Assembly (NCBI GenBank): GCA_000388065.2
Contig: KB932203.1
Direction: 5' to 3' (one strand)
DNA length: 49,695 nucleotides
Source: Fonticula alba ATCC 38817
Lineage: Eukaryota; Protista; Nucleariida
In this document: positions 3,106-49,695 of the stretch, piece by piece
How positions within the stretch are numbered: the first letter of the stretch is position 1
Layout: the number at the start of each line of letters is the position of its first letter
Translations under genes and position numbers: made by a program
Notes under the pieces: generated by a model
The model's input: the letters and a program-made list of their open reading frames with translations, nothing else
What the model was told of the DNA's origin: nothing
The model's database searches: none

Positions 3106-3875
3106 NNNNNNNNNNNNNNNNNNNNNNNNNNNNNNNNNNNNNNNNNNNNNNNNNNNNNNNNNNNNNNNNNNNNNNNNNNNNNNNNNNNNNNNNNNNNNNN
3201 NNNNNNNNNNNNNNNNNNNNNNNNNNNNNNNNNNNNNNNNNNNNNNNNNNNNNNNNNNNNNNNNNNNNNNNNNNNNNNNNNNNNNNNNNNNNNNNNNNNN
3301 NNNNNNNNNNNNNNNNNNNNNNNNNNNNNNNNNNNNNNNNNNNNNNNNNNNNNNNNNNNNNNNNNNNNNNNNNNNNNNNNNNNNNNNNNNNNNNNNNNNN
3401 NNNNNNNNNNNNNNNNNNNNNNNNNNNNNNNNNNNNNNNNNNNNNNNNNNNNNNNNNNNNNNNNNNNNNNNNNNNNNNNNNNNNNNNNNNNNNNNNNNNN
3501 NNNNNNNNNNNNNNNNNNNNNNNNNNNNNNNNNNNNNNNNNNNNNNNNNNNNNNNNNNNNNNNNNNNNNNNNNNNNNNNNNNNNNNNNNNNNNNNNNNNN
3601 NNNNNNNNNNNNNNNNNNNNNNNNNNNNNNNNNNNNNNNNNNNNNNNNNNNNNNNNNNNNNNNNNNNNNNNNNNNNNNNNNNNNNNNNNNNNNNNNNNNN
3701 NNNNNNNNNNNNNNNNNNNNNNNNNNNNNNNNNNNNNNNNNNNNNNNNNNNNNNNNNNNNNNNNNNNNNNNNNNNNNNNNNNNNNNNNNNNNNNNNNNNN
3801 NNNNNNNNNNNNNNNNNNNNNNNNNNNNNNNNNNNNNNNNNNNNNNNNNNNNNNNNNNNNNNNNNNNNNNNNNNN
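3106..3875. other. Assembly gap (N run)
   Basis: 770 N. Smaller gaps at 7913-7922 and 14763-14836. Confidence 0.99.
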
Positions 3876-4290: not shown

Positions 4291-7200
4291 ACAAAAGGCG
4301 AGGCAGGACAGCTGTCCCCGACCGCGGCGGCAGAGGTGACGGCCGCGGCTGCCGCCGCCGCCCGGTCCATTTCCGCCTGGATGTCCAGCAAATTGGCCTC
4401 ATACGACCGGAAGATGGTCGGGTGGTAGAGGAAGGAGCTGAGCCAGACCACCAGGAAGAGCAGACACACGGCCAGCAGGGCCAGGCCCGGCATGCCGGCG
4501 CGCTCGGCAGCACCCCAGATCAAGCCGATCAGGAAGGGCCCGATGGTGCGGCCCATGGCGGCCAGGGTCTGCCCCACGCCATTGGCCTCGCCGAGGCTGG
4601 GGGCCGAGAGGGATGGCACGCATACGAGTCAGTGTCACCAAGGGGGGAGGGGGGAGGGGGGGGGGGGGGGGAGGAGCCCAGCGAGCAAGGGCCCCCCTCC
4701 CCCGGCACACAGGCGGCCGCATGTGCACGCGTACCTCGATTGCGGGACCGAGTTGTTGATGTACACCATGACCGTGGTCAGGCCGGTGACATTGTTGACG
4801 CCGCGCGAAATGCACACGCTCACCAGCATCACCCAGAGGAGGGCCTCGCTGCCGGTCCACACGAAGACCCGCTGCGTCAGGCCCAGAGCCAGGGTGATGG
4901 GGATGACCATGAGCGCCCCGAAGCGCATGAGGGTCTGCCGGTGGCGGGGGCGCGTGCAGGCGTGCGAGCGCATGGGCGCAGGTGGCGCCAGGGGGGCCGA
5001 CGGGGCAGGTAGAGATTAGCCGGGGATGCGGGGGCCGGGGGCCGGGGGCCGGGCAGGCGTGTCGACCAGCGGAAGGTGGCTGGCGGGCAAGAGAAAGGCA
5101 CCACCAGACGGCAGGAGGCCGGTGGGGCGAGGAGAGGGGGGAGGGGAGGGGGGGGGGGACCAAGACCCCTGGCACCGAGGAAAGGCACGCACCACTAGGT
5201 GAAAACGCCGCGACACATGCCCATACAGGAACATGGAGTAGGGCGCGGTGGCGATGCCGATGGCCGCGAAAATGAGCCCCGATTGGCTGGATGTCCGGCC
5301 GAGGCCGCCCTCCTCCACCGGGAGCCGCGCAAACAGCGGCATCATCCCATCCCACGAGGAGTTGGACATCGAGAAAAGCCCGTACACCAGGGTGGCTATG
5401 AGTAGGTTGCGCCCGGCCGGCGGCAGGGCTGGGGCCTCTGCCGACTGGGCTCCCGCCTCGCCGGGGCCCAAATCCCGCAGGGGAATGGCCTCCCCGAGCC
5501 CCAGGGCATCCTCCTGCACCGGGGCGTATCGCCGGCTGGGGGAGGAGGTCCGTGCGCGGCGCACGCACCCCGCCAGCCCGGCATACAGGCGGCCGATGCC
5601 GCGGGTGGCGTCCGCATACAGGGCGGCAAGGGCCTCCGGCAGGAGGCCCCCAGGCGGCGGAGCCGGCGGCTTGATGGTCATCGATGCCTCGAGGCCGATC
5701 TGGTGCTCGAGCGGATCATCCGGCGTGGAGCGTGCCGACCCGGAGGACAGGCCGCTGTCCAGCAGCAGGATCGTCAGCACCAGCGACAGCAGGCAGAAGC
5801 AGGAGGCCAGCAGCAACGGCAGGAAGAAGGGCGACGCCAGCCAGAAGGGCGCCGGGAAGAGCCCGGGATACTGCCGGCCCGGATCATAAAGCAGCCCCCC
5901 CAGGAAGGGAGCCAGCACCGAGCCGATGGACCACACCGCCGACAGGTACGAGAAGGCCAGGCGTTGGTTGGTGTTGTCCGTGATCCGGCCCAGGTAGGAC
6001 TTGATGGTGCCGATGTTGCCATTGCATAGGCCGGCCAGGAAACGCAGGGCCAATGCCTGCCAGTAGGCCTTCGTCAGGCCGAAGAAGAAGGACGCGACAA
6101 AGGTCACCGACAGCGAGAAGGTGATGACCTGTGCCATCGGGTGGGGACGGCGAGCGCGCGCGCGCGCACACACACACACACACACGCACGGCAGGGAGCC
6201 GGGAAGGGGGGCGGCGATGGGGGGTGTTTGTGTCAGAATGTCAGCCGACGCCCCAGGCCAGGCGGGGGAGGGGGAGAAGGCGTCGAAAGGGGAAGAGGGC
6301 ATCCCAGCAAAAAAAGACCCAGCCCAACTGCAACAAGGAGGCAAATCCCGGCGCGATGCCGCCAGCGCGGCGGAGGGGGAGGGAAGAGGAGGAGGCAGGA
6401 TGCAAGCAGGCACGGGCACGGTACCTTCTTCGGGCCCAGGCGATCCGCCAGCCGGCCCCAGGCGTACGCCGAGCACAGCTGGCCCAAAGCAAAGGACGAC
6501 AGCAGGATCCCGGAATAGAAGCCCACCTGGCTGGGGTCAACTTCCGGGAAGCTGGCCACCATGAACGGCACAAAGGGCAGGATCATGTTCAGCTGCATGC
6601 CCTCGCTGAATTGCACCAACAACACAATGGACAACGATCGCCAGGGCAGCGGGGTGATGGCCGGCGGGGGGGACCCGGACAGGGTGGTCCCCGGGTCGCC
6701 GGACTCCGGCACCGGGGCCAGCCGCGAGCGCTGGCGCACCGTGGCCGATGAGGCGCGCCGTGGGAAGCCGGCACTCGCGCGGCCAAGCCCCGGGGTGGCA
6801 CTTCCCCATGGCCGCATGGTCGCCGGGTCCAGGCGCGACCCGCACTCCGGGCAGCAGGGCCCATCATCCACCGGCCCCGGGGTGCCAGCCTCCCCCAGCT
6901 GCAGGGCTTCCACCGGGAGGATGCGCGGCTCGATCGAGCCCCCGGGGCCCGGCGGCGGGGCATCCCCCCCGGGCCCGGCGGCGCCCACCGGCCCCAACAC
7001 CCCGGAGGAGAAGGGCTGCGCCGCGCCGCACTCCGCGCACCCGCGGTTCAGCAGGGTCAATGTCGTCAGCGGCGAGGCCATGTCCCCGAGGCTGGCCCGA
7101 CTGGCGGCCTCCTCCCGGGCCACGACCACCGCTCGGCGGAAGTCCGCACTATGGCGATGGGACACCCCGCTGCTGAAGCTCCCCCGGGGCCCGCCGCCGA

Positions 7201-7669
7201 AGGGGGCCAGCTCCGAATGCCGGCTGGCGAAGGACACCGGCGACGCCGAGCCCATCGGGTCCAGGCGCAGATCCGGCGACCAGGGCCCCGGCTGCGGGAC
7301 GGCCCCGAGCGCCATCGCCGGGGGCAGGGCCGCCGGTGATCCGGGTCCCGCCGTCCAACGGACCGCCAGATGGTCCTCCGAGTGCGAAGCGAGCACGCGC
7401 GGCCGGGCGCCAAAGCCCCCGGCCACCGGCAGGCCCATTTGCTCCGGCCCCGAGAGCGCCATGCCGGTTGTCAGTGCCACCGGCGAGACAGCGGCCGAGT
7501 CATCCCACAGCTCGGACGACGAGGGATCCCGCTCAGCCACCAGGTCCAGGGCCGAGGCCGACCTCAAGCCGGTGGACGACCCGGCCGGGGCGCCCGTCAG
7601 GAGGGGCCCCTCCTCATCGGAAGTGGACGAGTCGCCGCCGTGCCCGACGAGTAACCTGCCGTGTGGCAT
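4146..7669 (-). CDS. MFS transporter, ZIFL1/YCR023C-like, with long N-terminal extension, 943 aa, 4 exons
   Basis: Exons 7669-6425, 6128-5193, 4934-4735, 4596-4146 (2832 nt). Motifs: PLPWRSLSIVLLVQFSEGMQLNMILPFVPFMV, VGFYSGILLSSFALGQ, MFS motif A WGRLADRLGPKKV, RFLAGLCNGNIGTIKSYLGRITD, and GEANGVGQTLAAMGRTIGP. About 12 hydrophobic segments. The start ATG at 7669 is the most plausible choice but is not proven. Confidence 0.88.
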
Positions 7670-8209
7670 GGTTCCGAGGGGACCGGCGAGGGGGGACCGG
7701 CGAGGGCCGAAGTGGAGGGCAGGAAAGAAAAATAAAGGCCCCGGCGAATGGAGCAGCCAGGCGGGCAGAGACACGATTCGGACAAAGAGCAAGACAACGC
7801 AAAACCGAAGGCCGGCAGGGCGAGCTACGAGGCGCAAGGGAGAGTGGAGGATGACCCGTCCTCCGGTTCCAGGAGACCGGCCCGGGGCGCGGGCTCTCAA
7901 GGGACGCCCCCCNNNNNNNNNNGCGGCTGCGCGATCCGCGGGCACCCGGGCGCGATCGCGCCGCACAGAGCAGACGCGGCCAGCGCCGGGCACCGACCAC
8001 GCACGTCCTCTGCGCAGGACACCCCCCCCCCCCCCCAGACACACACACACACGCCCTACGAGGCACACGTTTTGAGGCGCCAGTCCGGCGCGGCGGGCGA
8101 AACCAGCGGCTGCACGCCACACGCTTGCCCCGCCAGCGGGGTGGGCTTCCTCCCGTGCCTTTCCTCCTGCAGGCCATCCTCCGACTCCTTGCCGGCCTCT
8201 CTCTCTCTC

Positions 8210-8265
<56 letters not shown>

Positions 8266-8869
8266 CTCCTTCCGTCGGGGCGTCCCCGCCCATGACCCGA
8301 CGGCGGGACGTCCTTCGATCGCTTGCGGAGGGGGGAATGCCGGGGGCGGGGGGCCCCCTTTTGGGGGCCGAGGCTGCGCCCCACTGACCGGGGACCGGGG
8401 AAACACCAGTCACATCAGTCTCCCCTCACTCTGCCCCCCCCCCCCCCCCCACCCGTACACCGCCGGCGCTAGCCCGATGCACCAGATTGCAGAGCATACT
8501 CGCGCGCGCGTGTGCGCGCTCGCGAACAGACACGACGGCCGCGCAGGTCATTGACAAGTGCCAACGCACGGGCCTCCGATCGTGTGCCAGGAGACAACAC
8601 ACTGTTCACAGAAAAAAGAAGGGAGCGGGGGGGGGGGGCCGGGCGAGGGTGTATTCCGTCTGGGGCCCGGCGTGCGTGTGCGCACGCACGCAGATCGGCC
8701 CCCAGGGCGGCAGAGAGGGGAGGCGGGGAGAGAAACAAGGAGGAGGACCCCCCTCTTTCGCCAGCCATATGGTACAAGGAGGAGGGGGAAGACGCATGAG
8801 GGGATGTGCGCGGACACACATTCACAAACACACAGGCACACGCACACAGGCATACAGCAGACGCACGAT

Positions 8870-17919
<9,050 letters not shown>

Positions 17920-24440: not shown

Positions 24441-25174
24441 NNNNNNNNNNNNNNNNNNNNNNNNNNNNNNNNNNNNNNNNNNNNNNNNNNNNNNNNNNNN
24501 NNNNNNNNNNNNNNNNNNNNNNNNNNNNNNNNNNNNNNNNNNNNNNNNNNNNNNNNNNNNNNNNNNNNNNNNNNNNNNNNNNNNNNNNNNNNNNNNNNNN
24601 NNNNNNNNNNNNNNNNNNNNNNNNNNNNNNNNNNNNNNNNNNNNNNNNNNNNNNNNNNNNNNNNNNNNNNNNNNNNNNNNNNNNNNNNNNNNNNNNNNNN
24701 NNNNNNNNNNNNNNNNNNNNNNNNNNNNNNNNNNNNNNNNNNNNNNNNNNNNNNNNNNNNNNNNNNNNNNNNNNNNNNNNNNNNNNNNNNNNNNNNNNNN
24801 NNNNNNNNNNNNNNNNNNNNNNNNNNNNNNNNNNNNNNNNNNNNNNNNNNNNNNNNNNNNNNNNNNNNNNNNNNNNNNNNNNNNNNNNNNNNNNNNNNNN
24901 NNNNNNNNNNNNNNNNNNNNNNNNNNNNNNNNNNNNNNNNNNNNNNNNNNNNNNNNNNNNNNNNNNNNNNNNNNNNNNNNNNNNNNNNNNNNNNNNNNNN
25001 NNNNNNNNNNNNNNNNNNNNNNNNNNNNNNNNNNNNNNNNNNNNNNNNNNNNNNNNNNNNNNNNNNNNNNNNNNNNNNNNNNNNNNNNNNNNNNNNNNNN
25101 NNNNNNNNNNNNNNNNNNNNNNNNNNNNNNNNNNNNNNNNNNNNNNNNNNNNNNNNNNNNNNNNNNNNNNNNNN
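24441..25174. other. Assembly gap (N run)
   Basis: N run following a poly-G tract. Confidence 0.99.
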
Positions 25175-26176: not shown

Positions 26177-26740
26177 NNNNNNNNNNNNNNNNNNNNNNNN
26201 NNNNNNNNNNNNNNNNNNNNNNNNNNNNNNNNNNNNNNNNNNNNNNNNNNNNNNNNNNNNNNNNNNNNNNNNNNNNNNNNNNNNNNNNNNNNNNNNNNNN
26301 NNNNNNNNNNNNNNNNNNNNNNNNNNNNNNNNNNNNNNNNNNNNNNNNNNNNNNNNNNNNNNNNNNNNNNNNNNNNNNNNNNNNNNNNNNNNNNNNNNNN
26401 NNNNNNNNNNNNNNNNNNNNNNNNNNNNNNNNNNNNNNNNNNNNNNNNNNNNNNNNNNNNNNNNNNNNNNNNNNNNNNNNNNNNNNNNNNNNNNNNNNNN
26501 NNNNNNNNNNNNNNNNNNNNNNNNNNNNNNNNNNNNNNNNNNNNNNNNNNNNNNNNNNNNNNNNNNNNNNNNNNNNNNNNNNNNNNNNNNNNNNNNNNNN
26601 NNNNNNNNNNNNNNNNNNNNNNNNNNNNNNNNNNNNNNNNNNNNNNNNNNNNNNNNNNNNNNNNNNNNNNNNNNNNNNNNNNNNNNNNNNNNNNNNNNNN
26701 NNNNNNNNNNNNNNNNNNNNNNNNNNNNNNNNNNNNNNNN
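26177..26740. other. Assembly gap, probably hiding the first vinculin exon(s)
   Basis: N run ending 12 bp before the first visible vinculin exon. The family N-terminus (about 60-70 aa) is not found in the flanking sequence. Confidence 0.95.
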
Positions 26741-43381: not shown

Positions 43382-45181
43382 CGGCCCGCTGAAAACGCAC
43401 CGACTGCACGACCGGCAGGGCCAACGTGTCCCAACGGTCCGAGTCGAAGATGGCCGCCTCGGCCGAGAGGAAGCCGGCCGAGCCGCACTTGGACAGGGCA
43501 GAGCTCAGCTCCGAGGCCACCAGGCCCGGGCACACGCGCAGGCGGATCCACCGCCGGCGTCGGACAGCGCTCATCCCGCCGGGAGTGGCGGACCAAGTGT
43601 TGGAACTCCACTTGTTGGCGTACTGAGGGAGGAGAGGCGAAGGGAGGGGGGAGATGGGCACAAGAAAGATGTTGGACGGTGTCAGCTCCGGGGCAGGCCA
43701 GCGGCGGCGCTGAGGGGGAGGAATCACCGGGCCAGTGGGATACGCACCTGCCAGCCGGCGGCATCGCAGCTGGCGAACTCCTCCGGCCCGGCGGCCTCGG
43801 CCGGCATGAGCACCGAGGACGCTGAGGAGGCCACTTCGGCCACCGGTTCCAGCGGCGAGCTCGGGTCTTCGGGGATGGAGTCGGGCCGCGACCGGGACCG
43901 GGCATGTGACCCGGATCCTGTGGCCGGCATCGAGCCGACCTTCTTCGGGTTGATGTACCGCCGGGGGCGGTCGTCAACGACCCATGTGTCCCAAAGCCAC
44001 TCCCAACTGGAGTTGCCGGCCGGGGTCATGGATGCCGGCGGCAGGGGGATATACTCCAATGGAAGGCGCGACTCGCCCCAGAGCGTGCTCCAGGGGCTGC
44101 GCTCGGAGGAAGTGAGATCTACACGCGGCGCGGCGAGGAGAGGGGGGAAGGGAGGGGGGGGGGGGGGGTCAGAAAGGTGGGACGGGGGCGAGAACGCATG
44201 TTGGGCGGCGCGACGTGGCATGTACTTCGTGCCGAGAAGGAGTTCACGCCGACAAGACGTCGCTGGTTCTCGTAGACCTCTTCCAGGACAAAGCCGCGGG
44301 GCTGGCAAGGGGCCGAGGTGTGTCAGTGATGGGGCAGAAATCGAGCCCAGGGAGGCGACACGGGGAATCGCGCACAAGACTGGCCTCGAAACTCAGCTTT
44401 GCCAGGAAGGCCTTCGGCTCGCGTAGGGTCGGGGCGTCGATCTTGAGGTCGGTGTCCTCGCTGGGGATGTCGCAGATGGTGTACTCGAAGTCGTCGTCCT
44501 GCATCGAGAGGAGGCAAGGCAGGTTGCGCGTTTGTGTGGGCGTGTGGGCGTGTGGGCGTGTGGGCGTATGCGCGTATGCGCGTATGTGTATATGTGTGTA
44601 TGTGTGTATGTGCGTATGCGCGTGCGTGATGGTGAGATCGGGGATGAGCAAAATGCAAGCGGACGGCGGCCTCGCAGGACGACGCACCCCCGCACGAGAC
44701 TTGATCACTCGCAAGGACACATAGAACCGGGGCAGGGGGATGGGCGATTGGGGGTCGGCCCCGGCAACTGTGGCCCCAGCCGGCGGGGACACGATGACAG
44801 TGCGCGTGACGGCCTGCGGTCGATTCATGGACGAGGAGAGTCAGTGGCCGAGCAGGGACGCGGGATCGTGCAGGATGGGGCAGGGCACGCACATTGGTCG
44901 ACCAGCCGACCACCGAGGAGAGACTGCCCGAGGGCCGGGAGTCGAAGGCCACCTCGCACCTGGACCCGAGCGTCGAGGAGGAGGGGAAGATGCGCTGCTT
45001 CAGCAGGAAGGCGAAGGGGGCCGGCGCGTCGCCGAGCAGGTTCCGCGAGGACCCCTCGGATAGGCTGTCAGAGAACTTGGCCGTGCCCGGGGGGGCGGTG
45101 GCCTGGTCGCTGACCGCGTAGGGCACCAGGACGGTGAGGATCTCCACCGGCTGTGGCCAATTGCATCAGTCGCGTGCGGGG

Positions 45182-45215
<34 letters not shown>

Positions 45216-45645
45216 AGGTCAGAATGGAGCGCCGCCAAGCAGGGGCCAGCGCAAATGCATGCAACCGTGGACCGGGACGCACCTCGCGGAACTTGAGCGA
45301 GTGCCGGCTCAGCGACAGGAGGGTGGACTTGGTGGCCGGATCGATGTGCTGGCGCTTGGTGCGGACCAGCTTCTTCATCTTGCGCCGGGCCGGGACATTT
45401 GCGGAGGTGGAGGAGGAAAGGACGGACGAGGCGTCGTCCTGGTCATCTGAGGCGCTGTCATCGTCTTCGGGCACGCTGGCCAGGATGTCGGCGCTCCCGG
45501 CATTCCGGACCACGGGGATCTCCTCCGCGGTCTCGGACTGGTCGACGAGGTTCAGGACATCGGGAACCGATGACCGGACGTGCAGGGAGTGCACTCGCAG
45601 GCCGAAGGCCGCGCAGCGGTTGTTGACGAGGATCGAGCTGACCAT
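42692..45645 (-). CDS. Dysferlin (DysF/Pex24-type) domain protein with C-terminal DUF4476-like helical domain, 610 aa, 10 exons
   Basis: Exons 45645-45283, 45150-44893, 44813-44688, 44498-44376, 44301-44226, 44118-43748, 43622-43401, 43251-43126, 42987-42931, 42802-42692 (1833 nt). DysF hallmarks assemble only after splicing: EEVYENQRR, ERSPWS, WEWLWDTWVVD, GWQYA, SAVRRRRWIR. The C-terminus FSDDQRLALL..EFMKVISYFRFDATRRKALELI resembles DUF4476. Confidence 0.7.
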
Positions 45646-48533
45646 CGCACGGTGTTGTTGGGGAGGGGGAGGGCGAGAGAGAGAGAGAGAGGGAGGGAAA
45701 AGGAGAGGGGGGAGGGAGGGGAGATGGGAGGAGATGGGTGGACGAAACGCGCGCCAGGCGCCCGCTGCCGGTGCCAGGGCCACGGAAATGTTGACCAGCG
45801 GGCGTGCGGCGGGGCGAGGCGGGGGCGGCGGAGAGGCGGCCCCGCCACCTGGACCGGTGGAGATCTCGATCGCGCAGCCAGAGCTCTCTTGACCGGCGGT
45901 CGGGCGCCGGCGCCGGCCGGTACACCGCAGCAGGGCCGCGACACCCCGGGCTCGGCGCCAGGCCCCTCCCCCTGCGCGGGCCAAGGCGCACGCGGCGCGG
46001 GCGTTGGCCGAGACGGTCTGCCTACGGTGGTCCCGTTCCCCCCCCCCCCCCCCCCCCCCCCCTGGCGCCCGTGGACTGGCGCTGGATAGCCTCCAATCGC
46101 CGCCGTGGGCGCCCGGCCCTGTGCCCCCCTGTCTCCCCCCCCCCTTGAGGCGGCCAATTTCCCGCCGAACGGGGGGGCCCGCCCCCTCGACGAGAGACGG
46201 CCCCGCGCGATGCCGCGTTCGGGGAAGGAACCCGCCGCCCTGGTGGGCGCAGGGGAGGGGTCCAGAGAAGCCGGGCGCCCCGCTCCAAAAAAAAGATGCA
46301 CCCGTCCCCCGGTCTGGGATCTGGCGGGCGGGCGGGCGGGCGGGCGGGCGAAGAGAAAAGGCGTGGCCGATCATGCGGCGGGCCTCTTCTTGGAAGGGCT
46401 CAGGGGCGAGCGCAAAGCTGGCCAATGTTGTGACGGCGCGCTTAACCCTCGGATCGTGTGATCTCCCTGCGCCTCAGTTGAGGACTCCGTGGATAGATGA
46501 ATGGCATTCGTGTTGTATCTCGTGGGGAGTGTCCTCGTGAATGGCTTTCCCTCCCGGGCGCGCCTCGGCCCTGTCCCCTTTTCTGGTGCTGGAGGCCCGG
46601 CGTGTCTGCGACGGGCCGGCGCGCGCGCGCGCGCTTCTCCTTTCTTTTCGGCCCGAGCAGCTGGTCCACCGGTTGGGTCGCGCGCGCGCGCGCGCGTGCG
46701 CACACACACACACACACACGTCCCATGTCCAGGCGCGTGCAACGTGCCGAGTCCCCGGGACACGAGGGGGCAGCAGGCCGCGGTGCCGTCCCACACACGA
46801 CCCCGGGGAGGGCGCGAGCCAAGGACACCCCACGCGCGCATGCCCTGCGCGCGCCCGGTGGGCGGGCGCTTGCGTGGCCTCCTGCACAGTACGAGGGTGG
46901 GGCAAGGGTTGAGGGAGGGGAAGGCCCGGTACAGCCCGGGGGGGGGGGGGCGTTGCGCCCGACGCCTGCACCCCGGGGCGAGGGCGAGGGCGAGGGCGGG
47001 CGGGGGCCTAGTAGGTTCTTAAAACCCCTCGCGACCTCCTTGCTGGCAGAGCCGTCTCCAGTCTCCTCTGGGGCCCGAGGAGGTGATGGCTTGATCGGCG
47101 GCCGGTGGACGGGCCTCCCCCGGCTCCGGGGGGGAGGGGGGGGGGGGGAATGTTGCGGTCCGGCGGTCGCGCCGCGTCGTTCTTGCGCAAGCCGGCGGCG
47201 CCTCCCGTCCGGGAGCCGGTCGTCCACATGCGCACGGGGGGTATTCCCCCCTGCCCCCGCCCGGCCGGGGGAATAGTGGGCCCCGGCGGGCTGGGCTCCG
47301 GTTACTTTCGGTGTGGCCGCCTCGGGACTTCGGCGGGCGCTTTCCGGGCGGGCCTGCGCCTTTTTGGGGGGACGGCTTTCCTGGCCCCGCCCTCCGGGAG
47401 GCCCTGCGCCCCCCCCCGGTCCCGCCGCCCTCCGCGGGCGGCAGAGAGTGTCCTCTGTGGGGGCGCCTCCGCCGCGCCTGCGGGGCTGGCACCACCCAGC
47501 CTCCAGCACAGCTGATGGCCAGGTTCTGGATGGTGTTCTGCTGGGGATACTGGCGACCGCGCCTGCCCCCCCCCCCCCCCGGGGGGGGAACCACGCGCAC
47601 AACACGCCCCTGCTCACGCCCCCGCCTCAGGCGGCCCGGCACGCCCCCTCCCGCCACCTGGCCCCGCTGCCCACTCTCCTGGCGACTAGTGCCTGCGATT
47701 CGGGTGTTCCGGGCGGCCGGGCGGCCGGGCGCATGCCCCCCCAGGCACCTCCCGGCCGCGCTGCGCCCTCTCCGCCGCCTCCCCCCCCCCCCCCCAGGCT
47801 GACGGCCTACGTCCGGCTCCTGCACACGCCCTGAGAGAGAGAGAGAGAAGGAAAGAGCCCGCACACGCACACGCGCGCAGATGGGCCCGCTGTGCGCTCC
47901 TGGAGCCCCCCCTCTCGCCGCGCCCTGCGCCACTCGGCACACCACACGCAACAGAGACGGAGACGGAGACGGAGACGGAGGCCGAGGGAGGGGCGGGCGC
48001 ACAACCAAACGGCAGGAGTCTTTCTTTCGGATTTGTTTGTATTGTGCCATACACATGGGGAAAAACGCGCAGAGGGCCACAGGAGAGGGACGCGCCGCCC
48101 CCCCCCACTCCCCCACCCGAAGAACAGGGGAGGGGGGAAGGGGGCGGGGGGGATGTGACAAGGACGAGAGGGAGGCGGGGGGGGGGGGGGGGGGAAGAAA
48201 AGGGGAGGGGGGGGGGAGGAAACGGCGCCGCCCTGCGGAAGAGCTTTGGGGGAACGGGCGCGCGCGCGCGCGCATACACGCGCGCGAGCGTGCCCCCCCG
48301 CGGAGGCTGAAGGGAGGAAAGGAGAGGAGCTACATGTACAGGGCCAGACACACACACGGAGAGGGGGCGCGCACGCGCGCGCGCGCGCAACGCAGGCAGA
48401 AGGGGAGGGGGAGGAAGGTAGGAGCGCGCACGCTTGCTCGTCCCAAAGCGTGTTCCGCGAGGCGGAGGGGGAGAGGGAGAGGAACGGAGGAACGGAGGGA
48501 ATGGGGGAGGGGGGGAGGGGGGGAGGGGCTGCT

Positions 48534-49685
48534 TTACTCGTCGTCCTCGTCGTCCTCGTCGTCGTCCTCATCGGGATCGGCAACCGGGATGGTCGGGTCG
48601 TCCATGGTCTCGTCCTCCTCCTCGTCCTCGCCAACGGGGAAGGCGTCATGGTGGAGGGTGGCCACCTCGCCGGCCTCGGTGCGCTGCTTCTTCACGCGAG
48701 CGGCGGCGGCGGTGGCGCGGGCCGGGCTGCGGGCATTGGTGGTGGTGGCCGCGCGGCGGCGCTTGGGGGCGGTGGTGGTGGGGTTGTGGCCGCGCTGGAC
48801 AAGGGCCGCATTCACCTCACGATGCGAGGGGGGAGTGTACTCGGGCAGGTGCTTGCGCAGGATGGCCAGCACCGAGGGGGGGGCCATGCGCACGCGCCGG
48901 GCAATGTCCGAAGTCCGGGGGGTCAGCCCGTGAATCGGGTCCGGGCGCTGGGCCAGGGCCACGATCAGCTCCGGGATCAGGTCGGTCCGCGGGCGGAAGG
49001 TCGGCATCTCGGCCAGGACGATCTTGCGCACGGTGCCCGGGGTCATGCCGGTGCGCCAGGCGATGTCGGAGTAGTCCATGACCGCCGGCGACAGGGCAAT
49101 GATCTCGCCATTGCACAGGAAGTGGCGCGGGCCCTCGCCGGAGAGGATGGCCTCGATCTCGGCGGTGCCGGCCGCCTGCGACTCGCGGGCCAGCTCCAGC
49201 ACCCGACGGCGGCGGGTGACCTCCGGCTGCTCGTAGTGCGGCACGAAGTCCCGGAGGACGGCGCGCACCTGGGCCTTGGTCAGGCGGGTCTTGTTGGCGA
49301 TGTCCTGCAGGGCCAGGTGGGTGCTGTCCGGGAGGACGCGGTTGCCCAGGCGCTCGGCCTTCAGCAGGCTCTTGGCATGGGCGCGGCGGTAGTGGCTGAA
49401 GTTGTCCATCAGCACGCGGTGAACCTGGTTCACCTTGAGCCCGAGCCGGGGGGCCAGCTCCGAGGGGGAGGGGATGGCATTGGCCCCGGTGGGCGGGGGG
49501 GACGAGTCGGAAGGCGACTCGGGGTTGTTGCCGTCGGCGCCCTCGGCGGCGGCCTGGCCGCCCTCGGCCTGGAAGGCCCGCACGGCATCGAGCACGCGGT
49601 CGGTGATGGCCTGGCGCTGCTCGCGCTTGATCTGGGAGGCGGAGGGGCCACCCTCAGCGGCGACGGGGGAGGAGGCTTCGGTCAT
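48534..49685 (-). CDS. Intronless 383-aa protein with four tandem helix-turn-helix motifs, basic NLS-like motifs and an acidic tail
   Basis: Single ORF with coding-like GC3 and a CCACCATG start context. Repeats: SELAPRLGLKVNQVHRVL, QDIANKTRLTKAQVRAVL, SDIAWRTGMTPGTVRKIV, SDIARRVRMAPPSVLAIL. Also PKRRR, RVKKQR and a D/E-rich C-terminus. An upstream exon beyond the window edge cannot be excluded. Confidence 0.8.
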   Translation of the reverse strand: MTEASSPVAAEGGPSASQIKREQRQAITDRVLDAVRAFQAEGGQAAAEGADGNNPESPSDSSPPPTGANAIPSPSELAPRLGLKVNQVHRVLMDNFSHYRRAHAKSLLKAERLGNRVLPDSTHLALQDIANKTRLTKAQVRAVLRDFVPHYEQPEVTRRRRVLELARESQAAGTAEIEAILSGEGPRHFLCNGEIIALSPAVMDYSDIAWRTGMTPGTVRKIVLAEMPTFRPRTDLIPELIVALAQRPDPIHGLTPRTSDIARRVRMAPPSVLAILRKHLPEYTPPSHREVNAALVQRGHNPTTTAPKRRRAATTTNARSPARATAAAARVKKQRTEAGEVATLHHDAFPVGEDEEEDETMDDPTIPVADPDEDDDEDDEDDE

Positions 49686-49695
49686 GGTGGTGGGG

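Follow-up and report, generated by a model that had tools for sequence, protein, structure and literature searches.

A single-exon Fonticula alba gene for a candidate lineage-restricted DNA-binding protein with four tandem repeats of helix-turn-helix signature

On scaffold KB932203.1 of the Fonticula alba assembly GCA_000388065.2 lies a genuine, transcribed, single-exon gene whose 383-codon ORF carries four tandem repeats with the sequence signature of a helix-turn-helix (HTH). It was found at one end of a stretch of 49,695 nucleotides, hereafter the window, which has a G+C content of about 70% and is broken by several runs of N. The reading that we favour, with somewhat more confidence than doubt, is that this gene encodes a lineage-restricted nuclear nucleic-acid-binding protein with a core of four tri-helical HTH modules. 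Judged by sequence searches, the kind of protein is a known one, that of tandem HTH DNA readers, while its family is undescribed and, at present sensitivity, consists of this protein alone. Within the opisthokonts, Fonticula alba branches at the base of the fungal side, and its set of transcription factors bears on how regulatory toolkits came about before fungi and animals split. An abundant-looking transcript encoding a protein with four prokaryote-style HTH modules, and with no relative detectable among about 1.8 billion representative proteins, would suggest that new DNA-reading architectures can emerge and become fixed within one lineage.

The ORF runs uninterrupted for 1152 nt on the minus strand and has a Kozak-like start-codon context (CACCATG). 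The G+C fractions at its first, second and third codon positions are 0.72, 0.50 and 0.93, and this third-position bias is as strong as that of adjacent spliced exons; in the neighbouring Pex24p-domain gene, which served as the comparison, the third-position values of the exons are 0.78-0.95. Transcript evidence came from RNA contigs of four public runs, all belonging to one study. In every one of the four runs, window positions 48583-49695 lie without a joint in one contig, 1182-1248 nt long, which reaches 27-90 nt beyond the last base of the window on one side and 42-66 nt beyond 48583 toward the stop codon on the other, with the reservation that contigs are no proof of transcript ends. As these contigs span the ORF without a joint, the coding sequence is transcribed and unspliced. 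The Pex24p-domain neighbour (window 43748-45522, minus strand) provides an internal RNA control. Its five introns, of 74-189 nt, are confirmed by RNA contigs, which skip them with CT..AC ends, i.e., GT..AG on the minus strand, and the runs therefore do contain spliced RNA. The initial annotation had called the 383-codon gene intronless, and for the coding sequence this holds. The word depth of the ORF contigs is 93-136 vs 4-8 for the spliced neighbour, a difference of about 12- to 30-fold, to be read with the caution that expression levels are poorly reflected in the depth of contigs.

The window ends at 49695 because an assembly gap adjoins it there. A run of about 3.25 kb of N begins 9 nt upstream of the ATG (positions 6740-9990 of the 21-kb locus L001), just past the final base of the window. 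The annotated ATG is probably right, since it has the CACCATG context and the RNA contigs end within 90 nt of the window end; it is still conceivable that the protein extends further at its N-terminus or that another exon lies upstream, the sequence at that place being N. Further runs of N lie elsewhere in the window, at 3106-3875, 14763-14836, 24441-25174 and 26177-26740. Beyond the gap, L001 2216-6740 is a 4.5-kb region of 76-80% G+C with no called gene and with poly-G runs of up to 73 nt (L001 3051-3123).

The features of the gene and its product are collected in Table 1. The protein as a whole has a pI of 5.8, and its charge is unevenly distributed: aa 1-65 have a pI of 4.3, and aa 66-300, which include the four units, have a pI of 10.5. 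The basic NLS-like motifs and the acidic tail described in the initial annotation are both present, following the last unit in that order, as the charge counts in the table show.

Table 1. Position of the ORF and of protein features in the window, with the basis of each assignment (AF2, AlphaFold2 models; helix limits in aa).
Feature	Window position	Strand	Basis and details
Complete ORF, 383 aa	48534..49685	(-)	stop codon 48534-48536; ATG 49683-49685; CACCATG context
Long N-terminal helix, aa 16-50, within acidic part	49536..49640	(-)	AF2, pLDDT 67-82
HTH unit R1, aa 73-99	49389..49469	(-)	Pfam Sigma70_r3, Rv2175c_wHTH; predicted helices 74-81, 85-95
HTH unit R2, aa 125-151	49233..49313	(-)	Pfam HTH_IclR 123-148; predicted helices 123-133, 137-147
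HTH unit R3, aa 204-230	48996..49076	(-)	weak Pfam DprA_WH, HTH_23, HTH_AsnC-type; predicted helices 205-212, 216-226
HTH unit R4, aa 257-283	48837..48917	(-)	weak Pfam HTH_24 259-278; predicted helices 258-265, 270-279
Basic NLS-like region, aa 301-340	48666..48785	(-)	charge count; 10 K/R, pI 12
Acidic tail, aa 341-383	48537..48665	(-)	charge count; 23 D/E of 43, no K/R

The four units share the pattern S/D-[ED]-[IL]-A-x-[RK]-x-[GR]-[LM]-x4-V-x2-[IV]-[LM]. Every unit has an invariant Ala and, 10 residues after it, an invariant Val, and the position four residues after the Ala is occupied by Gly in R1 and R3 and by Arg in R2 and R4. The HTH motif of Dodd and Egan is characterized by Ala5, Gly9 (for which another residue that is small or fits a turn may stand) and Val/Ile15 with flanking hydrophobic positions, and all four units carry this sequence signature at the classical spacing. 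Each unit closes, after hydrophobic residues, with a [PS]-x-[YF] cap, so that the aromatic cap attributed to every repeat in the initial annotation is found at all four. Successive units are spaced 52, 79 and 53 aa apart.

That these are true repeats can be seen from comparison of the protein with itself. The best ungapped self-match of 27 residues scores 57, whereas 500 shuffled versions of the core gave 22.5 on average and 40 at most, half of the unit pairs (3/6) lie above the 95th percentile, and an HMM built from the units recovers exactly four copies. The claim of four tandem repeats with an HTH signature is thereby borne out. Additionally, BLASTP aligns the R1-R2 half with the R3-R4 half over 86 columns at E = 2e-5. 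Because R1-R2 aligns on R3-R4 in this way, the four-unit array probably arose by duplication of a bipartite block, i.e., a block of two modules.

Profile searches place the units among HTH domains in general without placing the protein in a particular family. With the whole protein as query, seven of the eight Pfam matches are to HTH or winged-HTH models, each aligned to one unit through its helix 2-turn-helix 3 core, and all seven models are given beside their units in Table 1. Two of them exceed their cut-offs, Sigma70_r3 with 29.3 bits vs 25.3 and HTH_IclR with 25.6 bits vs 22. When the units were scanned separately, none reached a Pfam cut-off and the best score was 17.9 bits. The two passes therefore come from the summed repeats, and as such they are no proof of membership in the Sigma70_r3 or HTH_IclR families; the isolated R3 segment, for its part, matches Sigma70_r4_2. 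The identity of the protein as a sigma-70 factor or an IclR regulator was rejected, as only 23-26 residues are matched per model and the remaining domains of these families, sigma regions 2 and 4 or the IclR effector-binding domain, were not found. The best NCBIfam match, at E = 2.5e-4, is to Cbp1 (NF040595) and covers R3-R4, and membership in Cbp1/Cbp2 was likewise rejected at 21 bits, far under the NF040595 cut-off of 140. Searches of PHROGs gave weak HTH-type matches, all with E >= 0.01. We also considered and rejected the RNA polymerase III subunits RPC82 and RPC31, to which HTH_9 and Rpc31 gave weak matches (E 0.05-0.24), the Rpc31 one in the low-complexity acidic tail.

Structure predictions are consistent with this picture at low confidence. 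The AlphaFold2 models, built without an alignment, have a mean pLDDT of 52.5 for the full protein and 50.2 for aa 66-300 alone, so the core-only run was no better. Nevertheless, both runs predict helix-turn-helix secondary structure at all four units, at low confidence. The initial annotation had placed an amphipathic helix before each repeat. In the models R2, R3 and R4 each follow a helix, the one before R3 being a long helix at aa 155-182 accompanied by a short beta hairpin; R1, in contrast, follows a stretch predicted to be disordered, and the long helix of the N-terminal part lies further upstream of that stretch. The claim is thus borne out in part, at the last three units of these low-confidence models.

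Comparison of the models with known structures gave matches of the same general kind. Foldseek, run on the full low-confidence model vs the PDB, returned nothing at E <= 0.001, and a sequence search of the PDB with the protein and with the four-unit profile returned nothing below E = 0.05. A VIA-align search vs 48,161 chains had a best Z of 5.5, a value of the sort that, by the tool's own account, helical models often reach. Most entries in the VIA-align list for model ranges 14-107 and 154-239 are HTH regulators at Z 4-5, including ROK, Fur, LexA, CRP/FNR, TetR, DtxR/IdeR, Z-alpha and sigma types; these matches are consistent with an HTH fold, though not decisive. A separate model of the protein is available in the ESM Atlas (pTM 0.46). 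The ten nearest structural neighbours of this model there are all multi-HTH or AraC-type proteins, with scores of at most 0.79 and a TM of at most 0.42 by query, and they are to be taken as leads only, with Atlas feature scores in a range that shuffled proteins reach too. The description of the product as a modular multi-HTH protein therefore has sequence-level backing, from HTH-class Pfam models on all four units, and is structurally plausible.

Searches for relatives point to a protein that stands by itself. An exhaustive phmmer search of 1.84 billion representative proteins at E <= 0.001 found no true relative, whether prokaryotic, viral or from elsewhere in Fonticula. Apart from the query, it returned a single protein, P0002 (E = 4.6e-5), which we rejected as a repeat-inflated chance match: P0002 is 281 aa long and consists of four perfect tandem copies of 68 aa, it matches the non-HTH part at aa 267-328, and it reached its E value only because a weak match was counted four times. 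It is probably a translated satellite. Word-index protein searches with the whole protein, with aa 66-300 and with aa 197-292 each returned the protein itself only, and its sequence cluster has one member. A scan of viral contigs gave no relative of the 383-aa protein, and tblastn vs the window and the 21-kb locus L001 gave no paralogue. The taxonomic distribution and paralogue count that the initial annotation had proposed to establish are accordingly those of a singleton in these collections. A full-text literature search on Fonticula alba and helix-turn-helix brought up no such protein, as far as the titles and abstracts of the results listed tell. Because no relative appeared in any public collection searched, the product is probably a species-restricted nuclear DNA-binding protein.

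If this reading is right, a mode of action can be proposed from the layout and by analogy with other linked HTH proteins. The third helix of every module would enter the major groove of DNA. The four recognition helices differ from one another and are carried on short linkers, and they may contact successive major grooves, so that the protein would read one extended or composite site. The basic patch could serve in nuclear import. The tail, acidic and dotted with hydrophobic residues, might act as an activation domain or, alternatively, as an autoinhibitory DNA mimic that masks the basic core.

Several systems are known in which linked HTH domains together read a long site, among them the paired domain, Myb, and the archaeal CRISPR repeat-binding proteins Cbp1, with three linked HTH repeats, and Cbp2, with two (PMC3597662). 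The likeness to Cbp1 and Cbp2 lies in a small protein built from tandem, imperfect HTH repeats with short basic linkers between them; in Cbp1 and Cbp2 these repeats jointly bind one extended DNA site, and the NCBIfam match to Cbp1 spans the consecutive units R3 and R4 in register. However, Cbp1 and Cbp2 are archaeal and lack the N-terminal helix, the basic patch and the acidic tail, and the Fonticula protein has four units. A eukaryotic counterpart is offered by Drosophila Pipsqueak, whose DNA-binding domain reportedly consists of four tandem Psq HTH repeats of about 50 aa (Siegmund & Lehmann 2002, as cited in PMC6754745). With this nuclear protein of a eukaryote the Fonticula protein has in common the number of HTH repeats and their period, as the unit spacings given above show. 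In contrast to Pipsqueak and to the CENP-B/pogo group, the Fonticula protein has no match to HTH_psq, CENP-B or Tc5 in Pfam at E <= 10, and it also differs from Pipsqueak in having no BTB domain and no visible transposase ancestry. In AraC, linked HTH domains likewise read an extended or composite site. The nearest Atlas neighbours, multi-HTH proteins of Bacteroidota and phages (with HTH_23, HTH_7, HTH_Tnp_1, Sigma70_r4_2 or DUF7317) and AraC-type bipartite HTH proteins, resemble the Fonticula protein in having runs of small HTH modules, but they are bacterial or viral and have no sequence relationship to it by exhaustive HMMER search.

The ligand and the compartment are the parts of this proposal at which a different reading has most room. 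It is conceivable, though we hold it to be unlikely, that the ligand of the HTH array is RNA or protein, or that the array functions inside an organelle, and that the protein is not a nuclear DNA-binding factor. DNA as the ligand is something that we infer from the HTH signature, and helical-repeat arrays such as those of PPR and OPR proteins often read organellar RNA. Against this, the N-terminus is unlike an import leader: the first 30 residues include four acidic ones, aa 1-65 have the low pI noted above, and nothing of the mitochondrial type is recognizable there. In addition, a K/R-rich patch and an acidic tail are present, and the array has four modules only.

Given the prokaryote-style character of the repeats, the origin of the gene also has to be considered. 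The initial annotation had suggested a domesticated transposase or viral DNA-binding module, and one may also imagine a mobile element whose catalytic gene and terminal inverted repeats (TIRs) lie inside the assembly gap; we regard either as improbable. Tandem or bipartite HTH arrays are typical of the N-termini of Tc1/mariner, pogo and IS630-type transposases, the gene is intronless in an intron-rich genome, its closest Atlas neighbours bear HTH_Tnp_1, HTH_7 and HTH_23, and the upstream flank is the gap, for which reason claims on the origin of the gene call for a better assembly. Nevertheless, what can be read of the locus does not have the marks of a transposon. The sole transposase-type Pfam match is HTH_23 at E = 0.14, with no HTH_psq, Tc3, Tc5 or HTH_Tnp match. 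A DDE or other catalytic domain appeared neither in the ORF, in agreement with the initial annotation, nor past the gap, where Pfam matched none of the ten longest ORFs in the 4.5-kb region. The repeat search around the gene found only low-complexity repeats in the 3' flank (homopolymers and (GA)n/(GC)n) and no TIR. Neither the window nor L001 nor the protein collections contain a second copy, and there is no viral relative. Furthermore, the RNA contigs end 27-90 nt upstream of the window end, which argues for a 5' UTR that is short and against fusion to a gene upstream. The suggestion of a domesticated module thus found no backing in a transposase HTH family above noise, a DDE domain, a TIR on the readable side, a paralogue or a viral relative.

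Horizontal acquisition was the other origin put forward in the initial annotation. The donor would be a bacterium or phage, for instance one with the multi-HTH proteins of Bacteroidota and phages that are most similar to the Fonticula protein, and the gene would later have been assimilated by the host; we give this still less credence. The prokaryote-style signature, the bacterial or phage nature of the Atlas neighbours, the lack of introns and the fact that Fonticula eats bacteria would all accord with it. However, no prokaryotic or viral protein was found at E <= 0.001 among the 1.84 billion representatives and none in the viral contigs, and the Atlas scores are also reached by shuffled proteins. 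The third-position G+C of 0.93 is indistinguishable from that of adjacent spliced exons and hence host-like, and the basic patch with an acidic tail is the layout of a eukaryotic nuclear protein. With neither a prokaryotic relative nor a foreign composition, this suggestion was not upheld.

Very improbable, finally, is a non-functional chance ORF in DNA of 72% G+C under a non-coding or spurious transcript, since, although chance ORFs of 200-400 aa are abundant here in several frames and no homologue is at hand to reveal purifying selection, the ORF has strong codon periodicity like that of nearby real exons (0.50 at second vs 0.93 at third positions), a four-fold internal repeat that fits a known fold signature, a Kozak-like start context, and contigs of high depth whose 1182-1248 nt match its extent of 1152 nt.

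Between the 383-codon ORF and the Pex24p-domain gene lie 2.9 kb without genes (window 45650-48530), rich in tracts of (GA)n, of alternating (GC)n and of G or C alone (15-25 nt). Several RNA contigs stop or form chimeric-looking joints in this stretch, and many of its frames have chance ORFs of 200-400 aa. An Rfam search of window 45600-49695 gave nothing. Close to the stop codon of the 383-codon ORF on its 3' side, past a C-rich tract on the mRNA strand, window 48307-48495 is covered by short RNA contigs with a depth of 8-10, ten-fold below that of the ORF contig; these could come from a minor form of the mRNA with a long 3' UTR or from a transcript of their own.
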